Of a DNA stretch of 64,000 bases, positions 1 to 60,386 are shown one piece after another (the stretch's first letter is position 1; the number at the start of each line of letters is the position of its first letter). The notes below the pieces were generated by a model that worked only from the letters and a program-made list of their open reading frames with translations, was not told the origin of the DNA and did no database searches. Position numbers and translations under genes: made by a program. Source of the stretch: Penicillus capitatus (lineage: Eukaryota; Plantae; Chlorophyta); contig OZ287694.1 in the NCBI GenBank assembly GCA_965649825.1, positions 619,197-683,196 on the forward strand. The letters are read 5' to 3'.

Positions 1-2727
1 GAGATGGACTGAATCAAAGTAAGGTTTAGGCCTCTACGACATGAACAGACTCAGATCAACAATGCCATCTCTTCCGTGCTCTCTACCGCAGAGATAGAGA
101 GTGCAAGCAGACATTGTAATCCTGAGCTTGTTTATCGCTCACTGGATGACATGAGGCTGTTCGCGTAGAGATAAAAACAGAACATCTCCCCTGTATTGTA
201 AGAATATCAATTTACGCCAACTTGGATCGATTGGTCAAGGATAGAGAACCTGCACGATGATGCAAACAATCCTTAGAAGCAGAAAGGCAAAGGATGATTT
301 CTCCATTCATCGACTCTAATTGGCTGAGAAATATCGCGAGCATGAAATGTAGTGTTGCGGTGTATTGCCATTCTCACCCAAAGAGGTATCCAACCCCTTC
401 TAGGGAAAACAGAGAGAGTTCGTGCATCCCTGACATTCAGTTCTCCTTTGATGTGACAGGCCGCGTCGATCTGCCTGGCGAAGGACACGACGAAGGTCAC
501 ATCCGAACAGCAGCATCGCACAGCCAGTATAACATCTGCTGTCCTGGCATCTTGCTTTACGAGGTACTGAATCCACGAGCACAGGGATAGATAGTGGGAT
601 CGCCCTCGATGATAACAGGTATGCCAAGATGATCTGGGATCCCTCCTTTTCACTGATTAGCTAGACACGACGATGCTCGAAGCCAGGAGGCGTGGTCTGA
701 GGATATCGAGACGTCTTCCTTGGCAGGCAAACAAGTCAATCGTGCAAAGCGAGAGCCCAACGTCTTACGTTCCGTCATCTGCGCCGGCAGAATCGACGGT
801 GTACCGACTGTTTGTTCGTTCAGCGTTACGGTTGAGACGAACTTCGTTTTTGGACACGGTCGACCACGAGCGACGTGCACGCTACGACAAGAACAGCACC
901 TGGACTATAGTCAAGCTTGACGCGTTGTAACGTTGTCAACCCATCGCGGACTGCTGAAAAGATTTTCCATGCAACACATCGTTCGACATGCAAGACAGAA
1001 TAAAAGAATAACCGAAAGGGCAGGAAAGACGAGTACGAACGGTAGGGTTAAGTCTCAAGCCGATGCTCTTATCCTCCCTTTGTTTTCTGACTCGTCATAC
1101 AGGACTGCCCAGAACACAGCTCGTTATCTCTTAATTGATTGCTTGCTATCTGACTAAAAAGTAGGACCGGTCTTTGATCAAGGGAACCATTTTGCTACCG
1201 TCAGAACGGCGACATTCTATTCAGATGCAGAGCTAGATGAATTGAGTTGTTTTAGATGTCTAGTCAAATGGGTCATTTTAGGGCGATCGGTTGACTCTAC
1301 GAAATCTGAGCGCTGGTGACAGTGCTACATTACGCATTTTCCGATGCCATGATCATTCTGCGCAACGGAAAGTGCACCAGAAGCAAATGGTACGGCGAAG
1401 GATGTTGATAGATTGCGTTGTTGAACAACGGCCTTGTCAGTTCGGTTATGCTTCGGTAGTAAGTTGCACTCACTTAAGTTAGGAAAGGAACAAAGTCGGC
1501 AAACTCCTTCTGCGGCTGGGAAACAAGTCATCAAGAAACCTTACCATCTAATACCAATCATACCAAAGACCGTATGAAAAGGCACTGTGAAATGCCCTAC
1601 AAGGATACACTTTTAGTGTCGACATGTAACATGGTCAATTGGATGGACTGATATAGGCATCGTTCTCTACAATAACGCCAACGCATAAACGCACCTCGGA
1701 GACTTTCAGAAGTATATACCGAATTCTTGTTCTTGGTTATCTGTTTCTTTCTCATTGCGTTTTGTGAAAAAATACAAGAGTCGGATCGATGGCCGATCGC
1801 AGACTTGGCGTAAGGAAGGTACAATGCGCACGTCAGAAGTGTGAGCATGAATGGTGAATTCTCCGCTCGCGGATCAATAATCCATCCAGAGTGAACAGAA
1901 GTGAAAGACGTCTGGCTCGGCAGATATACAACGAAGAGCTGGAAGGCCACGATAGTCGAATACGAGTTAACACGATCCATTGTGTCACATGACGAATACC
2001 GTCACAGGAAGACGCTCTGGCATCACGTGCGTCTGGCCCCACTCCTGCCAGACGACACTGGTATTCAGCATCCCGATAGAGGTTTTAGCAATGCTTCGTC
2101 GTGTCCAAGAGATATCCGACAGAAGCCTTTCGATGGTTAGCAGCGTCTGTAGCTGTACGGAATCACGGTCGTGGTGATACGTGCAAACCGTCGTACGAAT
2201 AAATCGTCTGGCGACCATTGATTCGTGTCTTTTGTGTTCGTCTGCTTTGTTCCTCTCCGACCGAGCTGCAAACCACTGCGACTTGTGTGCGGACCACCTT
2301 CCTGTTGTTCGTGCGTTGGTCTGGCGACGCAGTACACGTCCTTCAAACCGATCGCGGAAGGCGGAGCAGAACGCAGTCGGAGGTTTGTCGACGGAGGTCG
2401 TCGGCTGTTTCCGCAGTGATCCGACCCGCCCGGAGAGAACGACGACGGGCAGTGGAACCACGAGCGCGGAGGACGACGTATACTGCGAAGTTTGCGTCCG
2501 AAGAAAAGCAAACTCCTAACTGACGCGTCAGAAACCGACGGGTCGTGCGTCGACTCTCCATGCAAGTAGGCTCTCCTTCGACCGCGCATCGCCTAAGCAC
2601 GTTGGTTTCTTCAAGGAGGCTCTGATTCCAATAGATTCCCGAGAGATTGCGATACCGCCCAACGAACAAGGCGAAAAGGGTACCATCACCGCGCACAACA
2701 TCCTCAGGCGAAAAGGGCACCATTACA

Positions 2728-3691
2728 GTTTCCCTGCCAGCGGCGCCCTCGGGAAATCCACGTGAGCCGAGTTAGCCATTATACCCAGGGGGTCAACGCA
2801 TGGGCGTGTGTTTCAGATGCAGCTGTCACCCGGTGGTGGCACCTGGCCGAGGCAGCTCTGCGGTGGGATAAGCGGAGTATGCGTGGACGTGGCGTCATTC
2901 TGAAGCGCTGGGCCCGGTCCAAGCCCCTCGCGTTCGGATCTGTCGCCGGTACCTTGAAGGATGCTGGCTTTGGAGGCCCCCACTCAGGACCCGCGTTTCC
3001 CTTTTTTCTGTAAGGGTCTCTTGTTAGGGTCTTTTCTTTCGTCCTGAGTGGGTTTTTCATTTCGCCGTATTAGACATTAGTTTTTTATTACTTTGTTAGA
3101 TCCTGCTCTTTCTGTTCTCCTTTCTGTGTTTAGTATAGAACCTCTCTTGACTGTGTCTTTTATTTCACTTCACTTCTATGTGTGCTCGGCGACCTTTCTG
3201 TCGCGTTTACTTTGTTCATGTTATGGTTTTCCAATTTTGTTTTTCTCATTCCCTGTGTTTTCCTGTTTGTTACTGTGCTGTTTGGGCTTGAGACCGGCCA
3301 CCTGCCTTCTTGACTGTGTGTTTCTCTGTTCGTGTTTTATTGCATGTGTGTTTTTTCATCTATACTGTGTGTTTTGCTTTTTTCTGTCCCTTCTTTGTGT
3401 GTTTTTTATTAGCGTGCGCGCCGCCTTTGCCTCCTTAGCTGGCTCTGCAGGGGGAAAGCACAGTGAAGGTGTGGGGTGAGGCTTTGCACGGGTCGGTGTC
3501 CCTGTCGTGGATGGTGACAGAAGCGGGCCCTGCAAGCTTTCGCTACCCCCCAGGTCAGATCCCTACCTCTCTTCTCGCAACTCTACTCGACATGTGTGTC
3601 TGCCACTAGGCTGTGGGTCGGGTCGCCGTCCGCCTCCAATGGACAGCTGGCGATATACTTCACCCGAGGGCGCCGCACGGGCAGTGGAAAC
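2728..3691. mobile_element. Non-autonomous ~965-bp element with imperfect terminal inverted repeats (MITE-like), copy A
   Basis: Left end GTTTCCCTGCCAGCGGCGCCCTCGGG; reverse complement of right end GTTTCCACTGCCCGTGCGGCGCCCTCGGG. Interior has a long T-rich non-coding tract (about 3000-3420) and no transposase. No clear TSD. Confidence 0.6.
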
Positions 3692-3693
3692 TA

Positions 3694-5711
3694 GGTGTTC
3701 GCTGTACGGAGACACAGTATCGAATGTCGCCCGAGGACGACGCGTGTCAGCCGTGTCCTCCGAATGCAAACTGTGCATCCGATAACGTCGTTCAGCCGAA
3801 CCGAGAGTACTGGCATCCGTATCCGTGCTCCGTGCACATGCGGGAATGCCTGAGCCAATCTGCGTGCGATTTTGATCGAGAGGCGCAGCTGGTCGCCATC
3901 ACAAGAGATATGCACGACTGTGATCTCAACGCGGCCACTGAAAGTGCCTATGCCGAAGAACAATGCAATGAGGTCTCGTTTTCCTTCTCCTAACCCCTTT
4001 TCTCCTATCTCTCGTGAAGCAGGGATACAGAGGCCCGCTTTGTGGTGAATGCAGAAGTGGATACGGTCATACGTCTTCTTGGGACTGCGACCGGTGCGAC
4101 AAGGACCTGAGCATTGCCTACCTAGTTCTCTCTGTTGTCGTCGTCTTGGCACTCAGCAGCTTCGCCATCAAGAGTAGTCTGGGACCAGCTCTATCAAGTG
4201 GACAAGACATCGCGCGGCTCCTTCGCCAAGTGCCAGCACGCAAGCTGATCAGAACCGTTTCTGTTCCGGAAGAACTCCAGTTGGCAGAACTCGGTGGTCC
4301 GTCAAGCAGAGTCGTCTCATCAAGGCGCCAGGCGACCGAGATCGCACGCAGTCATGGAAGCGACGAAGATAGCCAACTGTCAGCCGAACTGGCCAAATGG
4401 AAACTCGTCGAGATCTTTAAGGTACATACAGCATCAGACGCGGCTCCGTAAAGAATCTCTTGTTTCCAGATCACGATCAATTCTTTGCAGACGATTTCGG
4501 TGGCGACATACATCAGCTCCAACTGGACATCCTCGGCAAAGTCGCTGATCTCGGCAACAGGTAGGCCGCCATCGTCCCGCTTTCGGATAAGGGGCAGAGT
4601 TGTTCGATGGATAGATGTTGTTGGAGGCATGATGTTGAACACGGCGTCCTTTTCCATCGGATGTCTCACTCCGGTGGAGGCCGCCTTCCCCCGGTCCATC
4701 CTTCGCCCGATCGTCGCCATAGCCGTTCCAGTTGCCGCTCTCCTCCTGCACGGCGTTTTCTGGTTCTGCGTGGCGATGAGATCCGCAGAGAGCTGGGAGT
4801 ATTTGAAGAAGAGGTGGTCATTGAGCTTCCTTGCAGTTTCCTACCTGACCTATGTCCGGATCACCAAAAACGCCGTGAATGTGCTTTCCTGCGTCCGAGT
4901 GCGCCAATCCATCCACACAGGCGCAGAAAGCACGAGGTATCGCTGAACACAGGCGACCACCGTCAAGTGTTTCGCAGGATCCCATGCCATCCTTGTCAGT
5001 GTCCTTGGCCTACCCGTCCTCCTTTTGTTCACGCTCGGATTCCCAGTGCTGTTGTCGTGGAAGCTGCTGAGAAAGAGAAACCTCGATCCCTCGCACGAGA
5101 GCTGGTTTATGGATGCCACAGCGTTTCTGTATCGGGCTTACGCCGACAGGTTTGTCTATTGGGAGTCCCTTGTCCTGTTTCGAAAAGCGCTGTTGACGAT
5201 CGTCGTGGCATTTGGATACCACCTAGGATCGAACCTCCAAGCCATCCTTGCCGTCTGCATACTGACCACGGCACTGTACCTGCACACGATATGTCATCCC
5301 TTCCGAAACGAATCTGCCAGTCTGAATGTGTATGAAGAGGCCGTTCTCTTTTTCTCGAACATTACCTTTGTCATGGCTCTCTTATTCAATGACGATCGGA
5401 TCGGAAATGCTCTGAGGGTAGTGCTATCAGTTTTATTTTTTCTGTCGATCTGTGGACTGTTGGCTTTCTTGGGCTTTGTCTTTTCTCAGGCAACCTTTGC
5501 CTATATGCGCGTCGTACTGGAAATAGAAGAGGTTCTACAGATCGATGCGCTTGGCAATTTGCGAGTGATGCGCGAGTTCATGATCTTCAAAGTGGCGCAG
5601 AATGTCCCTCGCACGAGAAGCTTCATTCGTAAATCCAAATCCGATGAGGAGCAAGCAAACATTGGCCTGAACGCCAGACGAGATTCGACGGGTTTCTCCT
5701 CAGGATTGTGA
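3694..5711 (+). pseudogene. 5'-truncated beta-helix/Cys-rich/multi-TM receptor (stalk and membrane domain only) with a premature stop
   Basis: Exons encode CQPCPPNANC...YWHPYPCSVHMRECL, GYRGPLCGECRSGYG, several hydrophobic segments and FLYRAYADRFVYWESLVLFRK, all homologous to the C-terminal half of 13165-19403. TGA at 4944-4946 where copy B has TGG (Trp). No signal peptide or beta-helix upstream. Confidence 0.85.
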
Positions 5712-6741
5712 CCGTCGCAAACGATGGCCTCGAGCCTTGTATTCATGTCACAGACGGTTGTCGCGTGTTATGAGAGATCTCTTTGAAAGAACAACACTTT
5801 TCAGACTGTTGGCTCCCTGACATGCGAAACTACGGTTAACGCGACGTTCAGAATAGTGTCCAAAAAGACGAAAAAGCTATATGAAGATTTCCACTTACAT
5901 ACTGCTCAGCTTCGCCTTATTCCGACCCCAATCTCGCCGTTCTCCGCCATCTGAGAAACGCGCTTGCGGCCTTAACTGTCGAATCTAGGTTCCTCTTCTT
6001 GCTTACGGCGAGACCTTTAGCCACTCAATCTCTGTCAAGTTTTCCGTTTGATCCTCGCACTTGTCGACATTCATGCAGTCAGTCATGGTGGCATGCAGGA
6101 ACGTGATGTGGACAGCATTGGTGTGTCCGATTTGGCATTACCACATCTAACAAGCGTCTCCGCCACTTGTCTGCCACCATATCTGCCAAGGTCGACCTCT
6201 ACGGAGAAAACAACGCATTCCTTTGCAGTCTCCTTCGATTTTGCCTCATTCTTTGTCACTTAACTAAAAATTGAATAGAGAAGCTGGTGAAATGAGGAAG
6301 GCAAACCGAAGCGTCAACGTCAGCTCTCTCCCATGGATGTCCGACATCACATCACTCTATACGTCCACCCAAAGGATGTGAAGTGCGAGTCTGGATATAA
6401 GTTTAGACACGCCAGAGCTGGCCGTTGTCTGTCACTGTCATGTCAATGAAATGCGTTCAAGAGAGACGACACACACGAACGACAGTCGCCATCTCGTATA
6501 ATTCATTCAATCATTCGTCCTATCGAATGCGTTCGTCGAACCGCGAGGTGAAAAACATGTCCACCACAAGAACACCGCCATTTACAGCTTTGACGAAGGG
6601 AACGCGAACAGGCCGAATGCTCGAGGGTGACTTCACAGAGTTGAACACTGTGTTTCGATGCATTCAATGATCATAACGGATAGTGTCCGTACGGCACAGC
6701 AGCATCGTTAACGTCCATCATTTTCCTTTCTCTGCAACACG

Positions 6742-9249
6742 ATGGATGTCATAAGCGCGGCCCTAAAGGTGGCCGAAAGAATCGTCGACCGTGGCGCACT
6801 CGCCGTCACAAACGCCGAGGAGCGCAAACTGCTTGCCTCCTTGGCGGGACAAACGAAGCCGTTTCTGCAGACACTAGAGCAGCTTCACGTGGATGACCCC
6901 TCACTGCTCGCGGCGCTGGACCTCATGCTCCACGCACTCAATGAAGCAGACCGAGTCATAGAGGACTGTTGCAAGTCCACATGTTTGACAGGGATGTTAT
7001 TCGCTTCGCGGAACAGCGATAAGCTGAAGCACGTCGCTCAGAAGCTGCAACACGCGTTGCAACAGGTGCCTCTGGCCAGTCTGCCGATTGTGGGTGAGAT
7101 GCATGAATGCATGCTCGCTCTCCAAGACAACCTTCGCAAAGCCAAGTTCGACAGCGTGGCTGCATCGACGCATCAGACGAGGGTGTGGAAAGACGAAATG
7201 GAGAAGGCGTTCAACAGAAATCTGGAAGGGACAGAAGAGATGGAGACAATCCTCGTTGACATGATGAAGGAGCATTCCAGAACAGTCGAAGCCAAACTGC
7301 AGGACTTGGCTGTGCTGAAGGATTACATGCGCGAGGCGCGAAGAAATAAAGACCGGCTAATGGAGTACGAGCTAAAGCATATCATCGACGCCATTAATGA
7401 ATCGCTTAAGTAGACAGAACAGACCACGGCTTCGGATTTGTCTGCAGAACTTCTTGATCAGCTTTGTTGTTGTCCTATCAGCAAGGAGGTCATGAAGGAC
7501 CCAGTCGTGCTGAAAGATTCGGGCGTCACTTATGAGAGAGCCAGCATTGAGGATTGGATGCGACGCGGGAATAAGAAGGACCCCGTAACCGAAACTGAAA
7601 TCAAATCTTACGAGCTAATTCCAAGTCTATTGGCCAAGAGTCTTGTGAGTTTCGCAATTGCAATCGATGGATCGGAGAAACACCAAACCGAGACTAGAAA
7701 ACGACCCCCTCTCGGGGATGGATTAAACAAAGGACGCGGCCAGCATACACGTGCAGAAAATGCTGCCACTTCCGTCTGCATCCATTCCACTATCATATAT
7801 CATTGATGATGCGAATTTCAAGGTTGAGGAGAGGAGGAAGCGAGGAGGAGACCCAGTACGCGCTGAGTATTTTCCACAGTTCTTTACACCTCTCACGATA
7901 GCACCGCCGCCTGTCAGAGAAATAAGTCGATATGAGAAGGCAAGGGCGTAGTAACAAAGGCATGCAGTCGTTTGGAAGCGTATGTTGCAACGACAGGTCA
8001 GAGACATTCATTGCGATGACTTCGCCTTCGTCCACTTGGCTCATGCCCATTGCACAAGGGAGCACTGTGCTATTAAATGCATTGAACGTGGGAGAAAAGT
8101 AAGGCACGTGTGTTCCGTTGAGGATTTGCCAATGTCGAAGTGGGATGACAGATCGACAAGTACGTGCTGTATGGGATACTTAACCATCGAAGGTTATCTC
8201 ATCGTCACGTGATTCAGTTTAAAGAGGTTGCCAAACTATTGCTACTTCATTACAGCTTCTGCAAAAGTGTGACGGGTGATTGACATTCAGGTGTATTTGA
8301 CCCCCTCGTATTTGTGCATCGTCACAGAGTATGCTCCGGGTGGCAGTATGTTGGATTATGTCAAGATAAAAGATGATCCCAGCGAGAAGGAGATGCGTTG
8401 GTTTTTTCAGCAACTTATCATCGGTGTGGACCATTGCCATCAAATGAAAGTGGTACGTCCTGAGGTCAAACTCAAAGATGCTTGGCTGGATGGTGGCCGA
8501 CGTCCTCTCCTCAAAATCTCCCCCTTTAGATATAATGTGGTGAGCAGTGTCGTTACTGTCACTTTATCATTTTTCGGACGTTCCCTCCTCTGCAGCACGA
8601 TGAAGACAATTTAACACCGTTACCTGGAGTGGGTACACCCGTCTACGTGGCACCAGAGGTCATCGCGCCACGACAGGCATATGATAGCAAAGTGCGCGTT
8701 CGATTGCGCGACATCCAGAAGATGATGATGTGTGGTCTCGTTGTCTACAGAAAGCAAGCGTTTGGTCCTGTGGAGTTTGTCTGTACTTTATGATTTTTGC
8801 ATGTTATCCCTTCAAGAACGACAAGGCACGCCATGTCCAGACAATCAGACTACCTCATTCCCTTCCTCTGCTGCTAATCCTGTGTTTTCAGTGTATTTTG
8901 GAAATGCCGTTATCAATTCCCGAACATCCCGCCATCTCTGCCGATTTGGAAGACCTGTTGCACAAGATGATGGAAAAGGATCCAGAGAAACGGATCGGTA
9001 TAAAAGACATCATGGAACATCGCTGGTTTCAAACTGATCTTATAAATGTCGCCATAGACATAAACAAAGAACTCGGCAATCAAAGGGCAAGAAGTCGCTT
9101 GCAAGTAAGATCGATCTGTCCACATCACACCTCTCTTTGATGGAGTCTTACAGAGTGAAGAAGAGGTCCGTGCTATCGTGGAAGAAGCAAAGATTCCTGC
9201 TACAGATAAAGGGCTTAGATTAGACATCGTTTACACAGTAGGGGATTAG
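6742..9249 (+). CDS. MLKL-like four-helix-bundle domain + U-box + SnRK2-like pseudokinase (multi-exon; one in-frame TAG at 7411-7413)
   Basis: 6742-7410: helical domain (ALDLMLHALNEADRVIEDCCKSTCLTGMLFASRNSDKLKHVAQKL) matching the MLKL N-terminal pattern. Same frame continues after TAG into a U-box (CPISKEVMKDPVVLKDSGVTYERASIEDW). Spliced exons then give RYEKVRDI...AIKCIERGRKIDKY...LNHRRLSHRHVIQFKEVYLTP...FFQQLIIGVDHCH...GTPVYVAPEV...VWSCGVCLY...DPEKRIGIKDIMEHRWF, colinear with SnRK2 kinases. Exon joins inferred by eye. Confidence 0.8.
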
Positions 9250-10499
9250 ATGCACAGATACATACAAAGGGATCCGGGATTATATTTTACTCGTTTTAAT
9301 TATCTGTTGCCGCACTTGCAAAATCACTCAGTTTTGTAAAGACATCCCACTCACTCCCTTGGACATTCAGAATTGGATCTAGCACATCCAACCCTGATTT
9401 AGACTCCGTTATATTATTGTATTGATGAACGGCTGCAGATTATGTGAAACTAGATCGAGTTCAGTGCGAAACGCGAAGGGTCCGACAGAACTAACTATGC
9501 GCCGTCATCGTAGCTGTCACATGAGTTTCGAAAAAAAGCAGACGATACCTCTTCAGATTCGAGATCAAAATATGGTATCCTATGTTTTGACAGCAAAGAC
9601 GATCTACTACCAAGGAGATAATGCGGCGGTCGACCTTTTCAAACAGACCTTCATCCAGCTCCATCTGGAAAGCAAATTCTGGAACGAGTATCCGGTTAGG
9701 AAAGCCCATTGCTCTTGCCAAACGCTGCGAGAATCACCCCCACCCGCATCGGATTCAACGCCGTGCCACATCACGTTCCTGCATCCGGAGTCACTGGCAT
9801 GTTCCTTGATGAAACAGATCACACAGCAGTCCAGTACCTCTATCACTCCCATTGACATTGGCCATGACGATCGGATGCACAAGATCATCTCCATGAAGTT
9901 ATGACACCCATTTGCTGTCCACTCCCTAATGAGTGGGCTCTTTTATAGTCCAGTACATTGTTCTCAAACAGACAGAGATCGATGAGAAATCGTTTGCAAG
10001 GAGACCAAAGACCGGAAATCCAGCACTTTAGCATACGATTACCCCTTCTCCTATAAAAACGGCGCCCTCTCCCCGAACGTCGACTCTTGCTGGACACTGG
10101 ATCTCTTGGCTGGTACCATCGTTAGCGGCAAGAGCACGTGGATAACACCATAGACTGATATTAGAGAAGTGTCTCTAAGAGTGGCGTGATCTTCACTGCT
10201 GTAAGTCGTGCGCTTGGCGGAAAAGAGTGAGATACGTGCTCTCCAGCATCTACGTACGCCGAGTGGTTTGATGCAGGTGTATGTTTGTCGTACGACTAGC
10301 GGTTTTTGATCAGACTCATTTTATCTGCAGAACGTTTCTTTGTTCTTCGCAGCTTAGTGAATCGTGAGAATCGACACGTGTTCAAGGATGGATGCAATCT
10401 GTGCGATTTTTCTGATGGTGTTCCAGGACACCTACGAAAGAGTGTTTAGCGTTAGGTGTTGTTCAGGGAATTCACGCCGTTCTGTGTGTCACACAGACG

Positions 10500-11083
10500 C
10501 CTCTGGCTTCTGTATCTGCACCTGATTACGCGAGCGTCATCAGCGTCGCGTTTGAAGATGATTTTGGACTGCAAGAGGCGATAGACTCCGAAGGAGAGAT
10601 AGAGATGCCTCCGGAAGCTCCTGGTTCGCTCATGACCCAAGAGTCATCAGTCGTACTTATCACAACTGCATTGCAGAAGCAATGAAATCGGACGAAGCGC
10701 AAGAGAAGGCTGAGATAGACGTGGACGTCACATACACATACTACGCCCATATCGACTTTGATGTAGCAGATGTGGAAAGTGAAGGGGAAGGAGAAGGGGA
10801 GCACGATGCCGATGTCGACGTCGCTGCAGAGGAAGTGGAAGAAGAGGAAAAGAAAACAAAGAAGAGACAGAAAAAGAAGAAACCGACGACGATTCAAGTG
10901 TCCGAACGAACCACCCAGAATACTGTCGTGGAAAAAACTCCACAGAAATATCCAAGCACAACTCCCCCAAAGGCCACCAAGGATGAAGGAATTGATGGAG
11001 AGGGGCAACCTGTCTTGTTGGAAAGGAGTTCCAGACCTGATCCACAAGCACTTGTGTACGCAGTAGGACAGCTTGTCGGCTGA
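10500..11083 (+). CDS. Acidic low-complexity protein with shared C-terminal GI..G.PV..RPDPQA motif (family member 1; 5' end unresolved)
   Basis: ORF 10682..11083 is Glu/Asp-rich and ends TPPKATKDEGIDGEGQPVLLERSSRPDPQALVYAVGQLVG, which closely matches the end of 22595..23140. An upstream exon at about 10500-10652 can be joined by a short GT-AG intron. Confidence 0.65.
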
Positions 11084-13164: not shown

Positions 13165-16100
13165 ATGGCACCTTCGATGATGCTCTGGGTATCGCTTCTG
13201 ACCATCTGTGTCGCCACGCTGTGTGCCTCGCAGCCCGACTCTCGCGCTCCCAACGTCGCGGGATCGTCTTCGAGGGCCACCACGAAGTCGACAGGTGAGC
13301 TTTGCACTGCTGCCGTCTCTTCGCGTGTCGGTTCGACTCTTTTGCCGTCTCTCCCGCTAAACGAGACCGAAATCTCACATCTCTCTCTCTGAGTCCTCCC
13401 CTTCTGGAGTAGGCGACGAGTCAGCGGCACTTCCCATGTCCACAGACAGCGGCTCGAAGGAGTCCGACGATGCGAAATCCCACCACGCTGTACATCCTCG
13501 GCATCGACGGCTGCCTGCGGAATTGCGTCTTGTGTTTCCCCAGGCACCCAGATCTGTCCGTTCTCTGCAGCAAAGCCTCGAGGACGCCGGGGAAGAAGGT
13601 CTGAAACCCCGCCGCGGCGGATATACGGCCGTGACGTTGTCTTGAGCAGGTCGGTGTCAGCTGACGAGCAGCGCGATTGCGTCCATCCTCGACGTCGAAA
13701 CCAGAACGTGGCTCATCGACGACCGGCATCTGGACGACATCTCACACGACCTGCAAACTGTCATCGACTGCAGCAGCGACGGAGACACCATTCTCTTCAA
13801 CACCACGCGGCCAATCACGCCTCCAAGACGCATCGAGATTCCATGGAACCTGACCCTCAGTGACGCCGTGGACGCGATCGATCTCGAGAACGGCGTGTTT
13901 CCAAAGTCGGAGTCGCCGACGACGTTCACGTGTCCCGAAGGAGACGGCGTCTTCTCCATAAAGTGAGGATCCCCATCGACCGTGGGACAGGGCGATATCT
14001 TGCATCACCTCACTCGTCGTGTGCGTGCAGGACGGGAACAGCCCTTATCGCAAACATCGTCTTCAAGAACTGCACCCTGGACGAACAGGACGGCGCCATC
14101 GTGCAGCTAGATGAGTGTACATCGAAGGAAGCGAGCGGGACCGTTCGCCTTCACCGCGTGGCGTTTCGCGGACATCGACTGAACGGCACGAGCGCGTTCT
14201 CCTCTGGCGCCGAGTGCGCGTCGGTGGAGATGATCCGCGTCAAGTTCTCTGACAACTCCTGTGGGGACGCATGCTTCGCGCAGCTGGCCGCCGCCGCCGA
14301 CCTGAGACACGTCCGTCTCGAACGAAACGTGCCTGTAGCGAGTCTGGACACAAGACGTCCCGTCTCGCTGCTGCGTCTGCTCGCTGGATCGACGACTAAG
14401 GTCGTCGACATCCAACTAAGCCAGAATGCCGTCGCAGGGGTCCACGTCAGCGATGGGACGTTGAACCTGACCCAGTCGACCTTCGAGCGCAACTCCGAGG
14501 GTCCGACGGTCCGTTTGGACCAGGGCAGTCGAGCACACATTGCCGACTGCGTGTTCCGAGGGAACGAGGCGTCGATTCAGAGAGCGGAAGAGACGCTGCC
14601 CGAGTCGCTGCTCGCCTTCGAGAGCAGCGGGTTCAGATGCGTGCCCGTCACGATGACGCGGGGAAGCGCTCTCTTGTCGTTCGACAGCGACGTCAGAGTG
14701 AAGGGCTGCGAGTTTAGGAACAACAAGGTGCACGGAGACGCCAGCGGAATCTTCGCATCGGGCGGCACTCTGGAAGTCGACGCGTGCAGCTTCAGAGACA
14801 ACTCCGCGACTAAGGCCGGAGGCGCCGTCTATCTGCTCAACGCGCTGGCTCTGTTCGATAACGTCGTCTGCGTCGATAACAGCGCCGAAGACGGTGGTGG
14901 ATGTCTCTTCGCCGAGAACGCCACTGGCTGGATCGTCGACTCGCGTCTGAAAGGCAATTCGGCTTCAAAGGGAGGCGCTCTCTGCGTCAAGAAGTCCACC
15001 GAGATGCAGATCCAGAACAGCTCCTTCGTCGGCAATAGCGCTGAGGAGAGCGGCGGGGGAGCCCACGTCCAGGCCGAGCTCTGTCGCTTCGTCGAATGCC
15101 GGTTCGAGAGGAACAAGGCAAGGACGGGAGGCGGCCTGAACGTCGACAAAGACAGTGTCGTCCGCATCGAGCGCTCCACCTTCGTTCAGAACAATGCGTC
15201 CGATTCTGGCGGCGGCATGTCGAGCGAGAGAAGCGTCGTAGAACTGGAGGCCATCGAGCTGACAGGCAACCGCGCAAGCAGTCAGGGCGGAGCCGTCCGG
15301 GTAAAGGAAGAATCGACGATCCGTGTTCGGGATTCGCAGTTCCGGGAGAACAGTGCCAGGATATACGGCGGGGCGATGGTGGTGCAGAACAGCAAGGGGA
15401 CGCTCTCCGGATGCGAGGTCGAGAGGAACGTGGCGGACATCGGCGGAGGAATCGAGCTGTCGCGCACGTCCTCCCTCGAGATCCGAAACAACTCCGAATT
15501 CGTCGAAAACCGAGCGAGAAATGGAGTGGGCGGCGGAATCGACTGTCAAGGCCGAAGCGAGTTAAAAATCTCGGACGCCGAATTTCGGGACAACAATGCA
15601 TCGCGTCAAGGAGGGGCCATCTTCCTGTACGTGTCCTCTCTAAACGGGGAGCGTCTGGTGATGCTGGATAACGTCTGCGGGGATATGGGCGCTGGGGTGT
15701 TTCTCTACGGCAAAAGCACGGCGGAGTTCTCTGACTCGCTTTTCCAGCAAAATCGAGCAGAGTACGGAGGGGCAGTCTTTGTGCGCGAGTCGCAGGTACA
15801 CGTGCGTGGTAGCAAGTTCTTTGATTGTCGAGCAGAGAAGAATGGAGGCGGCGTCTATATCGAATCCCAATCCGTTGTCGTTTTCGAAGGCTCTGCTTCC
15901 GAGTTTTTGTGGAACATCGCCGCAGGGGGCGAGGGCGGCGGTGTGTACTGCTCGGATGGAAACCTGACGGGAGAATCGCTGAGCTTCGTGAAGAACTATG
16001 CTGCCGATGGAGGCGGGATCGCGATGAACATGGAATGCGAGGCAACGCTGTCTCTTGTGAACTTCAGAGCGAACAATGCCTCTCGTGGCGGAGGCCTCTA

Positions 16101-19100
16101 CGTCACAGGAGGGTCCAGAGTGGACCTGCGCAGCGGGTCGTTCGAAGACAGCCAGACTTCCGAGATGGGAGCCGCCATCCACGTCGAGCTTTCCTCTCTT
16201 AAGCTTCGCGGCGCCACGTTCCTGAACGGAACCTCCCAGACAGGCGGATTCGTCACGTGTCGGGGAGCCGACGTGACGATCAGGAATTCGCAGGCGGACA
16301 TCGGCCTGGCGAGTGAAACTGGAGGATTCATGGACGCAAGCGAGAGCAGCAACGTCTCCATCGCCAATCTGTCCCTCAGCGGCATGCGTGCCAAGACAGG
16401 CGGCGCATTTCACCTTGCAGCGTCCAACCTGCGTGCCAGAGGGCTTAGAGTGAACGGATCCTCGGCGGAGGAATCGGGTGGCGGGATTCACGCAGATCAA
16501 GGGTCGTCTATTCTCTGCCTCAAATGCGCCTTCGAGGGGAACGCAGCTGGCCGTTCCGGAGGCGGCGTCTCGATCGCATCCGCAGAACCGCAGCAGCTGG
16601 TCTACCAGTTCGACGGGTGTCACTTCAGCAACAACAGCGCCACACTCGGAGGTGCGTCGATCCTGCATCTCTGGGAGGAACGGATCGAGAGTGTTGCGGT
16701 GTAGGTGGGATTCACTACCTGAGCAATCACACGGCACCGGACTGTGGCAGACCGGAGGCCAACTGCACCCTGGTCGCCCTGGGCGGCGTTGAGCTCAAGA
16801 ACAACAGTGCCGAGTGCGGCGGCGGCATCTTCACGAGCGACCCGACAGCGTTCAGATTCCGCTGCCCGGAACATCACGAACGAGACGAGCTGGGGTTCTA
16901 TAGCGAAAGGGAGCTGGATGGAATGCGCGTTCTCAGATCCGATAAAGACCTCTGCGCCGGCGCGTGGTCCGGCAACACGGAGATCAACTTCGGACCCGAC
17001 GTCGCCACCTACGCCCGTCGCATCCTGTGGTTCATAGAGGACGCGAGTGGACCTGAGGCGGAGACGATCCAGATAGAGGAAACCCGCAAACGCATCGACT
17101 ACAAGAGCGGCGAGCCGCTTCCGAAGATCCGCCTCGAGGTGGTCGACGCGTTTGGCCAAGGACCTGCCTTCGGAGCGGGCAATGCCACGGTGGCGGCGGT
17201 GATGTGGTCTCCCTCGACGGACCCGTCCAAGAGCAATGCGCTCTTTCCGGGCAACGTCAGTCTGCTCATGGTGGACGGCACCGCAGAGTTTTCCGAGATC
17301 CGCGGCCTCCAGACGCCGAACGACTGCCTCGTGCGGATCGACTTCAGCGAAGACGCGCTGCCGACTCTGGAGATCGACGTGACCGTCCGGGATTGCATCA
17401 TAGGAGAGGCGCCGAACAACGATCGGACCCTCTGCGTCCCGTGCTCCCAGAGACAGTGCAGGGTGTCGAAGAAAGACGACCAGTGTCAGCCGTGCCCCGA
17501 GAATGCAAACTGCTCGTCCATAAACGTCATCCAGCCCAACAGAAAGTACTGGCACCGCCATCCGTGCTCGGTGCACATGCAGGAGTGCCTGAGCCGAACG
17601 GCGTGCGACTTCGATCGCGAGGAGGGACTAACGACTGTCACGGCAGAGATGCAGGACTGCACATTCAGCCAAACGATGGATGAAGATTACAGCCAGACGC
17701 AATGCCGAGAGGTGCCGTGCCTTCTCCCGTCGTCCCCTGTGCACTCTGACTACTTCTTTCTCAGGGCTACACCGGGCTGTTGTGTGGAGACTGCGAGGCT
17801 GGTTACGGTCACAGTTCTTCGTTCGACTGCGATCAATGCGACACGGGTCTCAGCATCGCGACCCTGGCGATCTCCATCATGCTGGTGCTGGCTCTCAGCA
17901 GCTTTGCCATCCGAAGCAGTCTGGTCCCGGTGCAGAATCCTCGACGCGACGCTAGAGCCAGTCGTCGAAGGATGTCGCGACGCTTTATCGGAGTAGCAAC
18001 CTCGGCTCCAGCCAGCATCCAGCTGGCGCCACTCGTCTCGCGCAGCAACCCTCCACCGAGATCGAGGCACACGCAGAACGAAGCGAGCCAGGAGGACGGG
18101 GGCGAGAGCTCGGCCGTGATGGCCAAGTGGAAAACGGTCGAGATCTTCAAGGTGAGGCTCCGCGAGCACGTTCTCACGATCACCGCTTGCATTTGCAGAT
18201 CACCATCAATTTTCTGCAAGTGATGTCGGTGGCGATCTACATCAACGCGAACTGGACGTCGTCGTCGACATCCCTCATCTCAGCAACAGGTCACGCCTCT
18301 CAGCGCTCTTCCGCAGGGAGTGCTCACGATTCGTGTGGATCTCAGACGCGGTCGGCGGCATGATGTCGGGAAGGGCGTCTTTCTCTGCCGAGTGTCTCGC
18401 GCCGGCGAACGCAGTCGTCGCACGGCCGGTCATTCGAGCCATCATCAGCTTCGCCATTCCCGTCGTCGCCGTTCTCCTCTACGGCATCTTCTGGCTGTGC
18501 ATGGCGTGCAGATCCGCCGAGGGCTGGCACTACTTCAAGAAGAGATGGCTGCTGAGCGTCGTCGCCGTCGCCTACCTCACCTACGTCTGGATCACGAAGA
18601 CCGCCGCCAACACCCTCTACTGCATTAGAGTGCACGATTCCGTCGACGTGGACGTCGACACCATGCATCGCTACTGGTCGCAGGACACATCCTTGCGCTG
18701 CTACAGAGGCCCCCACGCCGTTCTCGCCTTCACACTGGGCTGGCCGGTGATCGCCGCCTTCACGGTCGGATTCCCCGCCTTCCTGTACTACAATCTGCAC
18801 AACAGTCGCAGCTCCGATGGCCGACCGGCGGCCGTCTTCATGGAGATCGCCGCCTTTCTGTACCGAGCCTACTCGGACGACTTCAGATACTGGGAGCTGG
18901 TCATCATGTGTCGCAAGACGCTGCTCACCGTCGTCGCTGTGTTCGGCTACCACCTCGGATTCAATCTCCAGGCCGTTCTCGCCGTGTGCGTTCTGACGAC
19001 GGCGCTCTATCTCCACATCAGTGCCCGTCCCTTCAGAAAGGAGTTTGACGCACTGAACGCCTACGAAGGGGCGTCTCTGTTCGTCTCCAACATCACCTTC

Positions 19101-24781: not shown

Positions 24782-27700
24782 TTATGCCTCGGCCGCCGAT
24801 TGCTCGGCGATCTCGGAGTATTCGGATGTCGGACATATCTTGCCAATCTGATGTTTGACTTCGTAGCTGATCCAGTGTGCGAGAACGCGGAAACTGCCAG
24901 CATCAGATGCGACGAGCTCGTCGCGCTCTCTCAGCTTATACTTCAGGTACTCAGCTGCGAACTTGAGAATGTAGAAAACAAAAACGAAAAATGCAATGAC
25001 ATTCAGCAAAGCGCATGCGACTGTGAGCAGCTCGCGAGTAAAGTTTTCTGGATAGCTCTCGTCTTTGAGCATGACAGCTGCCAACGTTGTCGCCACTGAC
25101 ACAAAAAGAGACGCCAGTTCCATTCCATTGAGGTCTTTAAAGTCATCGCGGTATGGCATCACCAGAGTGTGAGCCAGGATGGCAAGCATGATGATGTACG
25201 CGACGCCGGTGATCGGCAATCCGCTGTCGAACAGGTGAGCGCAGAACACAAGAAAGGCGATGGCGGCCTTCCTTGCAACGATGGCGACTTCCCAGTATCG
25301 ACGATGATCCATTCGGTAAGAGCGGTAGAGGAATCCCGTTGTCTGGTACGCCCATGCGTCCTTGTGGACGAGGTGCTGCGGTGCATTTTTAAGGACGACG
25401 ACGAAGAGTGTGAAGAGTCCGCCGTACATTGGACACACAAACGCAACGACCACTCCGTAGAGGAGCGTACTGTGGTCTCCTTCGTAGCACTTCATGCTTG
25501 TGTCGACGGCCCAGTACATGTGCGTCGCGTTGACCTCTGCGATTTCTGCCGAGTCGTGCACGTCGACGCAGAGGAAGACGCTCAGTGCGGTCTTCAGTAC
25601 CGGCACGAGGGTCACATACCAGATGACCATCACCGAAAGCAAGCATCTCTTCGACAGGTAGCGGTGAAGCCCATCGTTTCCGGATCTCGCCGATCTCGCC
25701 GTCCAGAACACGATCCAACAGAGAAGCACGACGCAGGGAACAACGCACACGCTGACGACGAGTGCCATTGCCGTCGGCTGCAAGGACAGGTGTTTTGAGG
25801 TCAGACACACGACGGAGCGTCGAATGCCATCCGTCGCCAGACCTCCGAACATTTCTGACAGCAGCACAACAGTCGACAAGCGGAAACTTACGAGATTCTG
25901 GTCTCACCTGCCGCTGCCGCCATAACGATTACAGGAATCGCATACCCCACGTCAAGGGAAGCCAGAAGAACAGTCGTTTGGACGTAGCTCAGAGTGATCT
26001 AAAAACGACGTTTTTCAGTAGAAGGTAAACGGATCGAGTTTCCACCTTAAACATTTCGACGGCCTTCCACTTGGCCAAAGTCTCCTCGGAAGCAGGCACT
26101 CCAGCGGTTTGGACCTAAAGCGTACTCATTCGGCGGATGCTCTGATGATGTGATTCTAGACTCACTTCCCTCCCGAGTCCCGGCGATCCAATGACTTCTG
26201 CCGACGTAGACGGTGCACTCTGCTCATGAGTCTGCGCAGTGTCTCCGCGAAGAACGCTGACCGTTCCGTGGATCGTGATGCCCGTCATAGCCAGAAGAAT
26301 GATCGCCGACGTCAGAATGTAGGCCACGTTGTAGAGCCCCTTCAAACACTTTTTGCATTTCGAGGACAAACCAGCCCCGAAGTCTTCTTTGCAGGATCCA
26401 CAGAGTGGGCCCGTGTGACCCTTGTGAAGAAACAGACAGATGATTCAACGATCTAAAGAGTCAAGAATACATCTTACCTCGGCGCACTGAGCTTGCGTGT
26501 AATTCTCAATCCATTCTTCTTTGAAATTACAGCTCGAGACGTCTTCAACCATGGTCTTCAACTTTTCGGAGCGGCCTTGAGACTCGCAGGCGGAAGCCGG
26601 CAGGCATCTGTGAAGGTGATCTGAGCACGGCATTTGCTGCCAGTAGCCGTCGTCTGGAGTGATCACTCGAGACTCGCAGTTGCCATTCTCCGGACAGGGC
26701 TTACAATCTTCCGCAGAGAGGAGGAAGTTGTACGTCGTGCTGCTGCAGGTCTCACAGAATCCAGCATTCGACACAAACTCGCCGACAGAGCAGTTGTGGA
26801 CTCTCACGGTAATCCCGATGCTCTTGATCGCTTTTTCGCCAAACTCGACAATGAGGTCGTAGACTCCAGGCGGTACAAAGCCTTTGATGGATCGAAAAGT
26901 GCAAGCTCCTCTCTCCATCGGGACAACGATCGACACAAGCAAAAACTGACCGACCGGTGATGACATTCTGGCATCGACTGGGCGGTAGTTTGTCGCGGGA
27001 CTTTGCTTCAGTTCGTCCAACAGCTCGACTGTTGCGGTTGGCAGATCTGTGCCAATATGATATCCTTCTATCACACAGTTCTCTCCACCACTCACACAGA
27101 CGGCCTTGTTCGTGTCGTCCAACGTCATCTCTGCCGTTGCGGCATACGTCCCAACGTTAGGACCATAAACGCCACCGTGATTGCCTTTCCACGATGGGCA
27201 AATGTCCTTGTCCGATTTTAGTTGGCTCAAGGCTTTCCACTCTTTCTCCTCGTAGAAACGCAAACCGACATCTGACGAAGTGCTGACGCAACTCAAACGG
27301 ATTGCTTCTAGGTAGCCAGCGAAGACGGCCCCTCCGGCGACGCTGGCTTCGTTACCCGACAATTGGGTATCCGTCAAGGCCATAACGGGGCAGTGGATGC
27401 TCCTTGCCAAACATTTCGTGTGCCTTTCACTCGAGACGAAGAAAAGACCGCCTACAGATAAGCAGTAACAAGGTTTTTTGCTCTCTCGGAGCGAGCACTC
27501 ACCTCCCAGATCAGCCGTATTTTCTTCAACGTGGTTTCTTACAAGCTGCAATGGCAGAGTCTGATCGGAATGGGCATCGAAGAAAACTGCACCGCCGTTG
27601 CCATGCTTCGCCGAGTTGTTCCGAAACGTGCAGTCGGTGCACAAGAAGGTCGACGCCGCGGATCCCATAACGCCGCCGCCGTTTTCGCCAGCTTCGCAGT

Positions 27701-30700: not shown

Positions 30701-32452
30701 CTTCGGTGCCGTCCAGCTTCACAGTCGAGCTCCACGCCATCATGAACCCGCCGAACTCGGCGGTGTTGTTGGCCGCTTTAGTGCCGTTTAGCTTCACAGT
30801 CGAGTTCTTCATCGATATGAACCCGCCGTACTCTTTTGCACTATTGCCGACCGCATTCGTGTCGTCTAGCTTCACCGTCGAGTTGAACACCATCATGAAT
30901 CCTCCGTTTTCTTGTGCGCTATTGGCATTCGAGATTGTGTGCATGAACTTTGCTTCTGAGTCTTCTACGTAGACGCATGTTCCATTATCAAAGCCGACAT
31001 TTTCGTTGAAAATGGACCCGGAGACGGAGATTTTCGATTCTTTGGCGAAAATTGCGACTCCTCCGAAGCCTTCATTTGCAACGAAGGCGCATTCTTCCAT
31101 TTGAACAGACGACTTGACCAAATGAAAGCAGTGGTTCTTTGTGGCTTCGACGATCCGTGTACCCAGAAAATTCCGTTCGAACGACGCATTCGACACTGTG
31201 AGAGAGCCATCTTGAATTTTGACGCCGCCGATCTCGTTTTTTCGAACCGTGAATCCTTGGATCGTGGTGTTGGATGAAGCAGCACCAAAGAGCAAGGAGG
31301 ATTGCTGCCCCTTGGTCTTGGCCATTTTGTTTTCGAAAGCGGTGCAGTTTTCCAACCGGTTCTTCTTTCCGAGATGGACCCCGCAAGATTTGCCAGAACA
31401 GACGTTCTCCGTGATCTCCACTCCCACCATTTCAAGTTCGAAACACGACGAGGAGGGCATTCGAAGTCCGGAAGCCGCAATCAGCTCGTTCTTTCGGAAG
31501 ACGACTCGGTGCAGAGCTATGAGGCCGTAGGTGTCTTGGGAATGGCATGCTTCGACGTCAACAACCGCTTGGGATCCATCCGTGCCGTCGAATGCACACT
31601 CTTCAATGACGAGATCGACGAAAGTGACATTCATGGACCTACAAGCGAAACGAGAATGACCATCATTCTCACTCGACGCGGTCTTACTGGACGAGAAAGA
31701 GGCCAGAGTTCTTGTGGGGACATGTGAATGTTGTCTTTGTTTTTGGGCTGGGATTGACGCCGTCGTTAGAGTCGGCGTCTTCGACTTGGGTCATAAGGGT
31801 CAGTTGCCAGGGAATGGTGACTCGCGACGGTGGGCGCACGACACCTGTCGCGTTAAACGACAGAACATCGCCTTCTTTGGTGCAGTTGACAATCTTTTGG
31901 AGATCGTTGTCGATTTCCTTAAGCACGGTGCCGTCGACAAGCCATGTTTTGCTGTCGGCTGCCATGTATCTTTCTGTAGCATCATGCGTCAACGCACATT
32001 CAAAACCTAACACGTCGGAACACCCTCAGAAATCGGCATTCGGCACATTGAATGGAAAAAGCCGAACCTGTAATGATTCCATGACCAGACGCGTTGACCT
32101 GAGAAGGGGCGCGGGCCTCGTTTACCATCTAGAGACAAAAAACAAGATGTTCAATGCCTTTACTGCCGAATGGCGGCAGGCGAATCCGAACATTACCTTT
32201 CGAACGAGGTCGACAGAGAAAGCTGTGGGTGTTTTAGAAAGCCTGAGTGGCGGTTCGTCGTCCGTTTTGCCTAAAACAGCAAACAGCACTGCTGACGAGT
32301 CGCAGCGAAGTTAGCGTTAGAAAACCGTCTTTGGCAGAAGCGGCATCTGGAGGACGCGGGTGCGCGCTTTGAACTGCGCGTGACAGTCCGACTCCGTGCG
32401 CGAACGCGCAGCAGAGTAGACAGAGCTTGAGGCAAGACAGAATTCTTCGCAT
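24782..32452 (-). CDS. Large cell-surface receptor/adhesin, second complete paralog, with expanded beta-helix repeat array
   Basis: Signal peptide MRRILSCLKLCLLCCAFAHG at 32452. Exon 31684..32013 (TWLVDG..LQKIVNC..GD..PWQLTL..TFTCP) is homologous to about 13650-13960. Then a 1729-aa uninterrupted frame with GGF repeats, CKPCPENGNC, GHTGPLCGSC, and the TM domain in 24782..25879 (FLYRSYRMDHRRYWEVAIVARK). Confidence 0.9.
27740..30930 (-). repeat. Coding tandem array of ~42 units of 75/78 bp (25/26 aa; S[TN]xxLxxTxAxxNxAxxxGGFx)
   Basis: 42 GGF/CGF cores counted in the 1729-aa ORF. Near-identical DNA blocks recur, e.g. about 28921-29094 vs 29766-29940, and 29380-29500 vs 30150-30270. Confidence 0.95.
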
Positions 32453-43045: not shown

Positions 43046-43047
43046 CA

Positions 43048-53187: not shown

Positions 53188-53436
53188 CATGTCCTTCTTT
53201 ACGGGATTCCGCCGCCAGTAAGAAAGGTGGACGCCTCGTGGAGACGCCCGCTTTGCATCGCCATCGGGATTTACAAGTGGGCCCGACGACGCTAGAAGAG
53301 CCCAACTGTCTGCGCCAAAATCGTCGTGCGGTTTCCGCCGTCTACGGTAGCGTCTCAAGTGGTGTGCAAAGGATACTTCAATACTTGTATACTTCTGAAA
53401 TTGAATAATTCGATACTTACTTCAGTGAGCGAGCGG

Positions 53437-60290: not shown

Positions 60291-60386
60291 GTCATCCTCC
60301 GTGGTCGAGTCGGGAGATGGAGTTCTCGGCGAATTTTGGCAGCAGGTTTGATGCAGCTTCAATTGTTTCCCTTTCTCAGTCTGCAT

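Follow-up and report, generated by a model that had tools for sequence, protein, structure and literature searches.

The locus described here occupies positions 6742-9249 (+) of a 64-kb stretch of eukaryotic DNA from the green alga Penicillus capitatus (the window, by which we mean the whole stretch that was analysed), in which introns are short, of the GT-AG type and 49 to 64 nt long. The first part of the locus, which we call open reading frame (ORF) A, encodes a helical domain of the kind found at the N terminus of MLKL and of plant U-box (PUB) proteins, where it is known as the U-box N-terminal domain (UND), followed by a U-box. The second, ORF B, encodes in eight exons, ending at TAG 9247-9249, a kinase fold of SnRK2 origin whose catalytic motifs are largely lost. 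An earlier note on this DNA, made from the letters alone, had read these parts as one unit encoding a single protein, and had proposed it as a candidate new cell death executor. The features of the locus are as follows.

6742..7410 (+), N-terminal helical domain of ORF A (UND/MLKL_N-like four-helix bundle plus further helices), 223 codons, from the ORF translation, Pfam and AlphaFold2 (AF2)/Foldseek
7411..7413 (+), in-frame TAG, premature relative to the paralogs, which have CAG or CCG
7414..7644 (+), remainder of ORF A, a linker and the U-box (Pfam match to PF04564 at about 7468-7629)
7645..7806 (+), tail of ORF A, 53 codons, with stop TGA at 7804-7806; paralogs of 354/355 aa have the same end
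7806..7811 (+), ATGATG, the conserved start of ORF B by comparison with four related loci (L005-L008), out of frame in the window
7823..7939 (+), kinase exon 1, a Glu/Arg/Lys-rich N-terminal extension ending in RYEK; its frame is open as far back as 7751, and an alternative start, ATG, lies at 7760
7940..7996 (+), GC-AG intron of 57 nt, its gcaag donor and cag acceptor kept in five of five copies
7997..8098 (+), kinase exon 2, with degenerate Gly loop HCDDFA and retained beta3 Lys (AIKCIERG)
8152..8226 (+), kinase exon 3, 75 bp (the length of plant SnRK2 exon 2), alphaC with Glu replaced by Gly (VLYGILNHR)
8291..8539 (+), kinase exon 4, 249 bp (102+54+93, plant SnRK2 exons 3-5), catalytic loop RPEVKLKD (was HRDLKLEN) and PFR (was DFG)
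8596..8691 (+), kinase exon 5, activation segment with GTPVYVAPE
8751..8834 (+), kinase exon 6 (SVWSCG...), lacking about 33 nt that the paralogs have
8835..8891 (+), intron 6 region, with CA at 8842-8843 where the paralogs have a GT donor (GTGAAC/GTGAGC)
8892..9104 (+), kinase exon 7, C-lobe (alphaG-alphaI)
9154..9249 (+), kinase exon 8, SnRK2 box (QSEEEVRAIVEEAKIP) and stop TAG 9247-9249

The list of ORFs and their translations gives an ATG-started ORF of 223 aa at 6742-7413, which ends at the in-frame TAG between the helical domain and the U-box. The same frame continues past this TAG through the U-box to the TGA at 7804-7806, upstream of the kinase, and a reading from 6742 to 7806 in the window would equal exactly 354 codons. 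The notion of one reading unit fails on these two stops. Decoding of TAG as glutamine, as occurs in some ulvophytes, was considered and ruled out, since neighbouring long ORFs, family members included, stop with TGA (9), TAA (5) or TAG (4), which argues for the standard code; more than 15 paralogs contain no internal TAG or TAA. Nor did we find a plausible short GT-AG intron that would remove TAG 7411 without loss of the start of the U-box. The sole frame-keeping option of this type (7410-7481) was rejected, as it removes the first U-box residues, and other introns spanning the TAG have weak GC donors or entail large domain losses.

The paralogs, which come mostly from the ENA metagenome assembly ERZ25074695 (where the window's own 223-aa ORF is recorded on the 1.84-Mb contig ctg340529_34x_l), indicate what the intact arrangement looks like. 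Five short forms (P0045-P0049) are intact ORFs of 354/355 aa, 83 to 88% identical to the helical domain of the window. They carry Q or P at the position of the window TAG, and all five end at the position of TGA 7804-7806, with no frameshift in the 53-codon tail; at the related loci, the corresponding codon is CAG (L006, L007 and L008) or CCG (L005). Because the five intact forms read through this site and share an end, TAG 7411 is best regarded as a nonsense change in one copy of a family whose normal length is 354 aa, and the TGA that closes the U-box tail is a conserved feature of that family.

The layout of the locus is repeated at L005 and L006, both on the same contig as the window, and at L007, on another contig (ctg340500). 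At the DNA level, L005 is 85.8% identical to window positions 5500-10500, and L006 is 75.6% identical over 3 kb. In L005, L006 and L007, SnRK2-like exons lie directly 3′ of the 354-aa ORF, with identical splice sites that include the GC donor; L008 retains kinase exon 1 only and has lost everything after it. A conserved ATG(ATG)TGCATT lies 0 to 3 nt after the ORF A stop, or overlaps it, in L005-L008, and in four of the five copies (these same four) the ORF B start is in frame with kinase exon 1. The predicted N termini are MMCIKK.. (L005), MLRICK.. (L006), MMCIQK.. (L007) and MCINED.. (L008). Relative to ORF A, ORF B is in the same frame in L005 and L008 and in a shifted frame in the window, L006 and L007; that the frame varies between copies argues against read-through. 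At four loci, the window counted, sequences for a U-box ligase and for an SnRK2-derived pseudokinase lie side by side, and the adjacency of the two ORFs is conserved. The single bundle-U-box-pseudokinase protein of the earlier note is not what the intact paralogs encode: they have two ORFs with a conserved stop and start, so that at the ORF level the helical domain and U-box are separate from the kinase part.

We considered a weakened form of the single-chain model, in which splicing from GTGAGT (7645) past the ORF A stop would, in the intact or ancestral gene, yield a UND-U-box-pseudokinase, the window being a recent nonsense mutant of such a gene. In the window, GTGAGT reads as a Val-Ser codon pair, and its use as a donor is not demonstrated; it is kept in four of the five copies. 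The join to an acceptor at 7756, which the first reading of the locus implied, is in frame in the window alone and meets stops in L005 and L006, and it was therefore rejected. Other pairs (7645 to 7822, 7828 or 7831) are in frame in the window, L005 and L006. However, this shared property is automatic wherever ORF A and exon 1 are free of frame-shifting indels, so it is not independent support, and we dropped it as evidence of fusion. The candidate acceptors are also AAG or GAG, whereas the established acceptors of the kinase gene are CAG or TAG. In favor of such a splice, the ORF A tail diverges at a near-neutral rate, ORF B has no space for a promoter of its own, the kinase occupies the exact place of the C-terminal domain of longer paralogs (described below), and one gene model from Caulerpa (P0084) has a UND, a U-box, ankyrin repeats and a kinase in one chain. 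Set against this are the position of the ORF A stop, retained in five intact paralogs behind a 53-codon tail without a frameshift, and the conserved ATG in frame with the kinase in four of five copies; moreover, P0084 alone among the relatives scanned has a kinase, and that kinase is TKL-type, not SnRK2. We consider the spliced single chain unlikely. Since the implied intron meets stops in the paralogs, the other in-frame joins are trivial and the acceptors are atypical, we take the unit to consist of two adjoining ORFs, with a UND and U-box ligase encoded by ORF A and a pseudokinase by ORF B.

In the 223-aa ORF of the window, Pfam MLKL_N (E = 7e-5, 22.8 bits) and PUB10_N (PF25368; E = 2e-4, 22.4 bits) both score below their curated cut-offs, of 27 and 32.6 bits, respectively. 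When 10 members of the family were scanned, PUB10_N matched all 10 (each at E ≤ 0.01, the best at 5.4e-9), MCAfunc 7, MLKL_N 4 and Rx_N 1. An AF2 model built from a 10-sequence alignment (mean predicted local distance difference test score [pLDDT] of 72) is all-helical. Its top PDB folds in Foldseek are human MLKL executioner domains (6zvo, 2msv and 6zz1; probability 0.9 to 1.0, target-normalised TM score about 0.6, E at least 0.24), and even the match to 6zvo_A, with probability 1.0 and a TM score of 0.62, has a nonsignificant E value of 0.24. A sequence search of PDB with the N-terminal domain gave no significant match. These profile matches place the domain in the MLKL_N/PUB10_N/MCAfunc group, and to that extent the MLKL-like call stands; across the family, the best-fitting model appears to be the plant U-box N-terminal domain rather than MLKL_N. 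The U-box is clear, as had been claimed (PF04564, E = 3.2e-13, 50.1 bits against a cut-off of 21.4, at about 7468-7629, downstream of the TAG). Helical domain and U-box together make up the ordinary UND and U-box module of plant PUBs, so no MLKL-like executor role follows from them, and we do not carry the claim of a cell death executor further.

A profile search for UND and U-box relatives among 1.84 billion representatives returned 316 proteins at E ≤ 1e-10. Of the 150 best, 44 full-length relatives were scanned with Pfam: a U-box was found in 43, ARM repeats in 16 (classical PUBs), ankyrin repeats in 6 and a kinase in 1, with PUB10_N at E ≤ 1e-4 in 9 (best, 1.2e-34). A phmmer comparison with P0013, the closest relative of the kinase, covered all 146 newly returned sequences. 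No fused UND-U-box-SnRK2 protein was present among the 150 best representatives. The sole kinase match was P0084 (Caulerpa lentillifera g5121.t1, a predicted gene model of 1550 aa), which has a UND-like domain, a U-box, about nine ankyrin repeats and a kinase in one chain; its kinase is TKL-type, with HRDLNSIN and with NFE for DFG, lies about 900 residues past the U-box and is not SnRK2-derived. The closest named relatives are from C. lentillifera for both ORFs, and from Ostreobium as well for the kinase, which suggests that the host is probably a bryopsidalean, that is, a siphonous green alga. Pfam found no ARM repeats in the window copy, P0047 or P0048, and the Joint Genome Institute (JGI) metagenome contigs scanned contained no relatives of the family. 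As to whether the architecture is undescribed, as had been supposed, the combination of UND and U-box is known (PF25368); its pairing with an SnRK2-derived pseudokinase was not found described in our searches and looks new.

The short forms belong with a group of longer paralogs (P0001-P0010), most of them intronless and 616 to 794 aa long; P0007 is a truncated copy of 381 aa. These are 57 to 64% identical to the window over their first 335 or so residues, after which comes a C-terminal domain of about 290 aa. The ORF A tail is homologous to the start of this C-terminal region, and LIPSL in the window aligns with LIPNR of the long paralogs. The C-terminal domain itself, carried by the long paralogs P0001-P0010 (L001 10001-11869, L002 10001-11851 and L004 10001-11929), had no match in Pfam. 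AF2 models it (pLDDT, 70) as all-beta with about 16 strands, which we read as two up-and-down barrels. The closest structures in PDB, both of them weak matches, were kievitone hydratase (E = 1.5e-3) and the avidins (probability 1.0, target-normalised TM score about 0.6). In the Caulerpa proteins, this domain is placed between the U-box and the ankyrin repeats. Two long members have mobile-element neighbours: at L002 (contig ctg296184_87.61x_c, 46.6 kb, 87x, the final "_c" being read as a circular flag), P0006 adjoins a Ty3-like reverse transcriptase/integrase, and at L001 a Ty3-like polyprotein lies just upstream of P0001. Truncated or frameshifted family members also include, besides P0007, P0050-P0053. 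Within the window, both strands of 59743-60864 carry fragments of the long U-box family, including pieces of the C-terminal extension of P0002; residues 72 to 142 of P0001 are found at 60064-60277 (-), with 78% identity over residues 72 to 121. These fragments are pseudogene debris of that family.

That the kinase fold is of SnRK2 origin, as the earlier note had it, is well supported. Pfam Pkinase matches with E = 6e-40. In PDB, the best matches are SnRK2 kinases (SRK2E/OST1 and SAPK10), followed by AMPK and other CAMK-group kinases; Arabidopsis SRK2E scores 1.5e-63 versus 4.5e-33 for AMPK, and the alignment extends through the SnRK2 box (QSEEEVRAIVEEAKIP). Plant SnRK2 genes have conserved exon lengths of 75, 102, 54, 93, 93 bp and so on (PMC5433004). 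The window exons of 75 bp, 249 bp (102+54+93) and 96 bp match this structure, while an extra intron, the GC-AG one, splits plant exon 1. Unlike SnRK2 proper, the window kinase lacks the C-terminal acidic domain II (the abscisic acid [ABA] box), the ORF ending 15 residues past the aligned SnRK2-box stretch, and has replacements in the Gly loop, the alphaC Glu, the HRD Asp, the catalytic Asn and the DFG Asp. The dismantling of the motifs is exactly as first described: GSGNFG has become HCDDFA, the alphaC Glu a Gly, HRDLKLEN RPEVKLKD and DFG PFR, with the beta3 Lys and APE retained. Among the catalytic residues tested (Gly loop, beta3 Lys, alphaC Glu, HRD Asp, Asn and DFG Asp), the window keeps the beta3 Lys only.

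The Gly loop reads CSGEFA in L005 and CSGDFG in L006, and the HRD segment reads CRD and SHD, respectively, with the Asp kept in both, where the window has RPE. The catalytic-loop Asn is Asp in the window and His in L005 and L006, and DFG is PFR in the window, GFK in L005 and GFR in L006; in L007, the beta3 Lys is gone too. The change of the alphaC Glu to Gly and the losses of the catalytic-loop Asn and the DFG Asp are common to the window, L005 and L006. Since the three aligned copies share these losses, the ancestor of the cassette was already a pseudokinase, without the alphaC Glu, the catalytic-loop Asn or the DFG Asp. P0013, the closest database relative of the kinase, comes from environmental transcripts and has intact catalytic motifs, save that HRD reads SRD. 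Its identity to ORF B is 66% for L005, 63% for L006 and 51% for the window; judged by such comparisons, the window pseudokinase appears to have drifted the furthest of the copies compared. A separate observation concerns P0011 ([Myrmecia] bisecta WJX72_001264, 824 aa), in which an NB-ARC domain is joined to an SnRK2-like domain that lacks the beta3 Lys and whose Gly loop is degenerate. This adds a second green algal example of such a fold linked to a module of the immune type.

Relative to its paralogs, the window copy is damaged in several ways: TAG stands for CAG or CCG, a 1-nt deletion between 7818 and 7819 puts the conserved ATG of ORF B out of frame, the intron 6 donor is lost, exon 6 has lost about 33 nt, and the kinase has suffered additional catalytic losses. 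A substitute donor, GTCCAG at 8835, or in-frame retention of intron 6 may compensate for the missing one. At positions invariant in ten long paralogs, the window differs at 21.9%, the others at 0.9 to 13.9%, and by these measures it is the most degenerate of the copies examined. Its own branch nonetheless shows (unpolarised) ratios of nonsynonymous to synonymous differences (pN/pS) of 0.29 for ORF A and 0.46 for the kinase. The value for ORF A suggests that the nonsense change is recent; the window copy, if disabled, would have been disabled recently.

It may be argued that the locus is in fact intact and functional, the TAG and the 1-nt deletion being assembly or consensus errors or a minor haplotype. 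The pN/pS of 0.29 on the terminal branch of ORF A points to constraint until recently, the U-box segment is nearly the same as that of L005 (a divergence of 0.03 at 0-fold degenerate sites), and the source is a metagenome assembly. However, the contig name gives 34x coverage, and substitution errors are rare in a long-read consensus of such depth. There are also several independent lesions in this one copy, and even with both changes put down to error, ORF A still ends at TGA 7804-7806. We regard this explanation as very improbable.

ORF A as a family is under purifying selection: between copies, the ratio of 0-fold to 4-fold divergence is about 0.4 to 0.5 in the helical domain and 0.33 in the U-box. 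Divergence is near neutral in the ORF A tail and in kinase exon 1, although the indels of exon 1 among the five copies are all multiples of 3. For kinase exons 2 to 8, the picture depends on the pair compared. Between the window and L005 or L006, 0-fold divergence is 0.20 to 0.22, against 0.33 at 4-fold and intron sites; between L005 and L006, 0-fold divergence is 0.127, intron divergence 0.120 and 4-fold divergence 0.174, which is about neutral. None of the three copies has a stop before the natural terminator in these exons, and all indels are multiples of 3. When substitutions at the observed load were placed at random, the frame stayed open in only 0.4 to 0.7% of simulations (window, P of about 0.004). 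The ratio of nonsynonymous to synonymous rates (dN/dS) by the NG86 method, which gave 0.4 for the kinase, was abandoned as a test of selection, because comparison with intron and 4-fold sites showed that it overstated the constraint.

One way to explain these figures is that ORF A is the only gene, and that the kinase exons belong to a dead SnRK2 pseudogene which lay downstream by chance, was copied along with ORF A by segmental duplication and has been decaying at a copy-specific pace. The near-neutral divergence between L005 and L006 is what such a pseudogene would show, as is the stepwise, copy-specific loss of motifs, with L007 lacking the beta3 Lys and L008 everything after exon 1. The window, for its part, has lost a splice donor, about 33 nt and its start frame, and truncated or frameshifted members are known elsewhere in the family (P0007 and P0050-P0053). 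A pseudogene sits poorly with the lack of an early stop in exons 2 to 8 of the window, L005 and L006, with exon indels that are all multiples of 3 and splice sites that are retained, with simulations that leave the frame open in less than 1% of trials, and with the lower 0-fold than 4-fold or intron divergence on the long branch to the window. We judge it improbable. Because stops are absent, indels come in multiples of 3 and simulated frames rarely stay open, the frame of ORF B has been kept while its residues changed fast. A pseudokinase that is translated and evolves rapidly would account for this better than a relic dead for long, though recent decay may also have played a part.

The copies also appear to have exchanged sequence. 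Across window positions 6600-9400, the tree of ORF A pairs the window with L005, while the tree of the kinase pairs L005 with L006 and leaves the window as an outlier. Between the window and L005, the region upstream of ORF A is only 3% divergent, and the U-box segment, as noted, hardly differs. Given that the two trees conflict, the copies are probably mosaics produced by gene conversion.

Taken together, we lean, with somewhat better than even confidence, toward the view that the window holds a decaying copy of a lineage-specific two-ORF cassette that has been duplicated several times, and that pairs a ligase (ORF A) with a pseudokinase (ORF B). When intact, ORF A (354 aa) would be an E3 ubiquitin ligase of the plant PUB type, with a UND/MLKL_N-like bundle, further helices and a U-box, and may have arisen by truncation from the 616- to 794-aa family with its extra all-beta C-terminal domain. 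ORF B, whose ATG adjoins the ORF A stop or shares bases with it and which has plant SnRK2 intron positions and the SnRK2 box, would be an SnRK2-derived pseudokinase. The two would presumably be coexpressed, and the pseudokinase may serve as a noncatalytic partner of the ligase (an adaptor, regulator or decoy), by analogy with the kinases that partner with plant UND-PUBs, rather than as part of a membrane-permeabilising chain of the MLKL type. ORF A of the window copy would be translated only as far as the end of the helical domain, and ORF B could be produced only if the alternative ATG at 7760 is used; because of TAG 7411 and the 1-nt deletion, its product would be at most a 223-aa helical protein, plus the pseudokinase from ATG 7760.

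Several observations weigh against the cassette as we propose it. ORF B starts 0 to 3 nt after a 354-codon ORF, which leaves no room for a separate promoter, and the leaky-scanning route of green algal bicistrons suits short upstream ORFs, not one as long as ORF A. The near-neutral ORF A tail and kinase exon 1 may mark an intron there, and hence a spliced fusion. The agreement of 0-fold (0.127) and intron (0.120) divergence between the L005 and L006 kinases fits decay as well as fast adaptive change, and the pN/pS of 0.29 for the window ORF A means that the TAG is recent, or an allele, or an assembly error. Finally, we infer the role of the pseudokinase as partner, adaptor or decoy by analogy only. 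ORF B may be expressed from a bicistronic mRNA, from a separate promoter or through a spliced fusion.

Green algae are known to express polycistronic nuclear mRNAs (Gallaher et al. 2021, PMC7896298), with leaky scanning as a route to the downstream ORF (PMC11291117), and both reports likewise argue against read-through. The cassette resembles such loci in having two same-strand ORFs with almost no spacer and a relative frame that varies between copies. It differs in its long upstream ORF (354 codons) and in a downstream ORF with eight introns. Among proteins of land plants, the nearest to ORF A are the UND-PUBs, such as Arabidopsis PUB10, PUB12 and PUB13 (PF25368, PF04564 and ARM repeats), which share with it a PUB10_N/MLKL_N/MCAfunc helical domain followed by a U-box. 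Unlike these, ORF A has no ARM repeats and ends 53 codons past the U-box, the long paralogs bearing the all-beta domain instead, and the PUB10_N score of the window copy is below the curated Pfam cut-off. Plant UND-PUBs work with kinases, and PUB12 and PUB13 target ABI1, a PP2C of the SnRK2 pathway (PMC4667695).

MLKL, in animals and plants, carries a four-helix bundle, a brace and a pseudokinase in one chain. The predicted N-terminal fold of ORF A is nearest to the human MLKL executioner domain (Foldseek E at least 0.24), and a catalytically dead kinase fold is encoded adjacent to the bundle. In the window, however, the U-box and two stops separate bundle from kinase, and the pseudokinase is a CAMK-group, SnRK2-derived one, not related to TKL/RIPK kinases; two of the three testable defining features of MLKL are thus lacking, as the pseudokinase is neither in the same chain nor of TKL lineage. 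Plants also have proteins in which a U-box is linked to a kinase fold (the PUB32-35 and PUB50-55 class), and there the kinase lies N-terminal to the U-box and is an active one of the receptor-like cytoplasmic kinase (RLCK) type. The linkage is shared with the present locus; the kinase of that class is not SnRK2-derived.

Other features of the window lie around the cassette. A segmental duplication of 4.1 kb (94.9% identity) joins 1948-6048 and 41291-45399, its first copy ending about 700 bp upstream of ORF A. Downstream of the cassette, at 13930-16704 (+), is an ORF for a right-handed beta-helix/PMP-repeat protein (Pfam Beta_helix, 4e-37), the single Pfam match among ten other long ORFs of the window. 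In L005 (1-2226) and L008 (1-1185), the beta-helix ORF lies upstream of the cassette, along with ORFs of 332, about 160 and 359 aa; since these ORFs flank the cassette in both, the duplicated segments are larger than the cassette itself. An uninterrupted ORF of 1729 aa at 26445-31634 (-) shows strong internal repetition and matches nothing in Pfam, and a tandem repeat with a period of about 400 bp and copies 84 to 93% identical occupies 53189-55385. The sole RNA gene found in the window is a tRNA-Leu(CAA) of 99 nt at 31836-31934 (-); a search of the window with Rfam gave nothing at gathering thresholds.

A bolder, and in our view doubtful, possibility is that L005 and L006 produce ligase and pseudokinase from one transcript, as a bicistron or a spliced fusion, and that the two work together as a switch, the dead kinase sensing a target, or recruiting one, for the MLKL_N-like/U-box effector. 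The whole bryopsidalean family, with its UND and U-box combined with beta-barrel, ankyrin or kinase modules and its birth-and-death evolution, would then be a receptor-like repertoire for algal immunity or wound response, a notion echoed by the NB-ARC-SnRK2-like fusion of [Myrmecia] bisecta.

As it stands, the window copy is a damaged member of a fast-evolving family, and we offer it as a lead for RNA work in siphonous green algae rather than as a discovery in itself. If the cassette works as we favor, a dedicated pseudokinase would be tied, outside the land plants, to an E3 ligase of the PUB type whose N-terminal bundle is MLKL-like, and SnRK2 would join the kinases that have been converted to noncatalytic modules. 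Such a pairing would bear on how the ubiquitin, kinase and cell death signaling modules of the plant lineage have been assembled.

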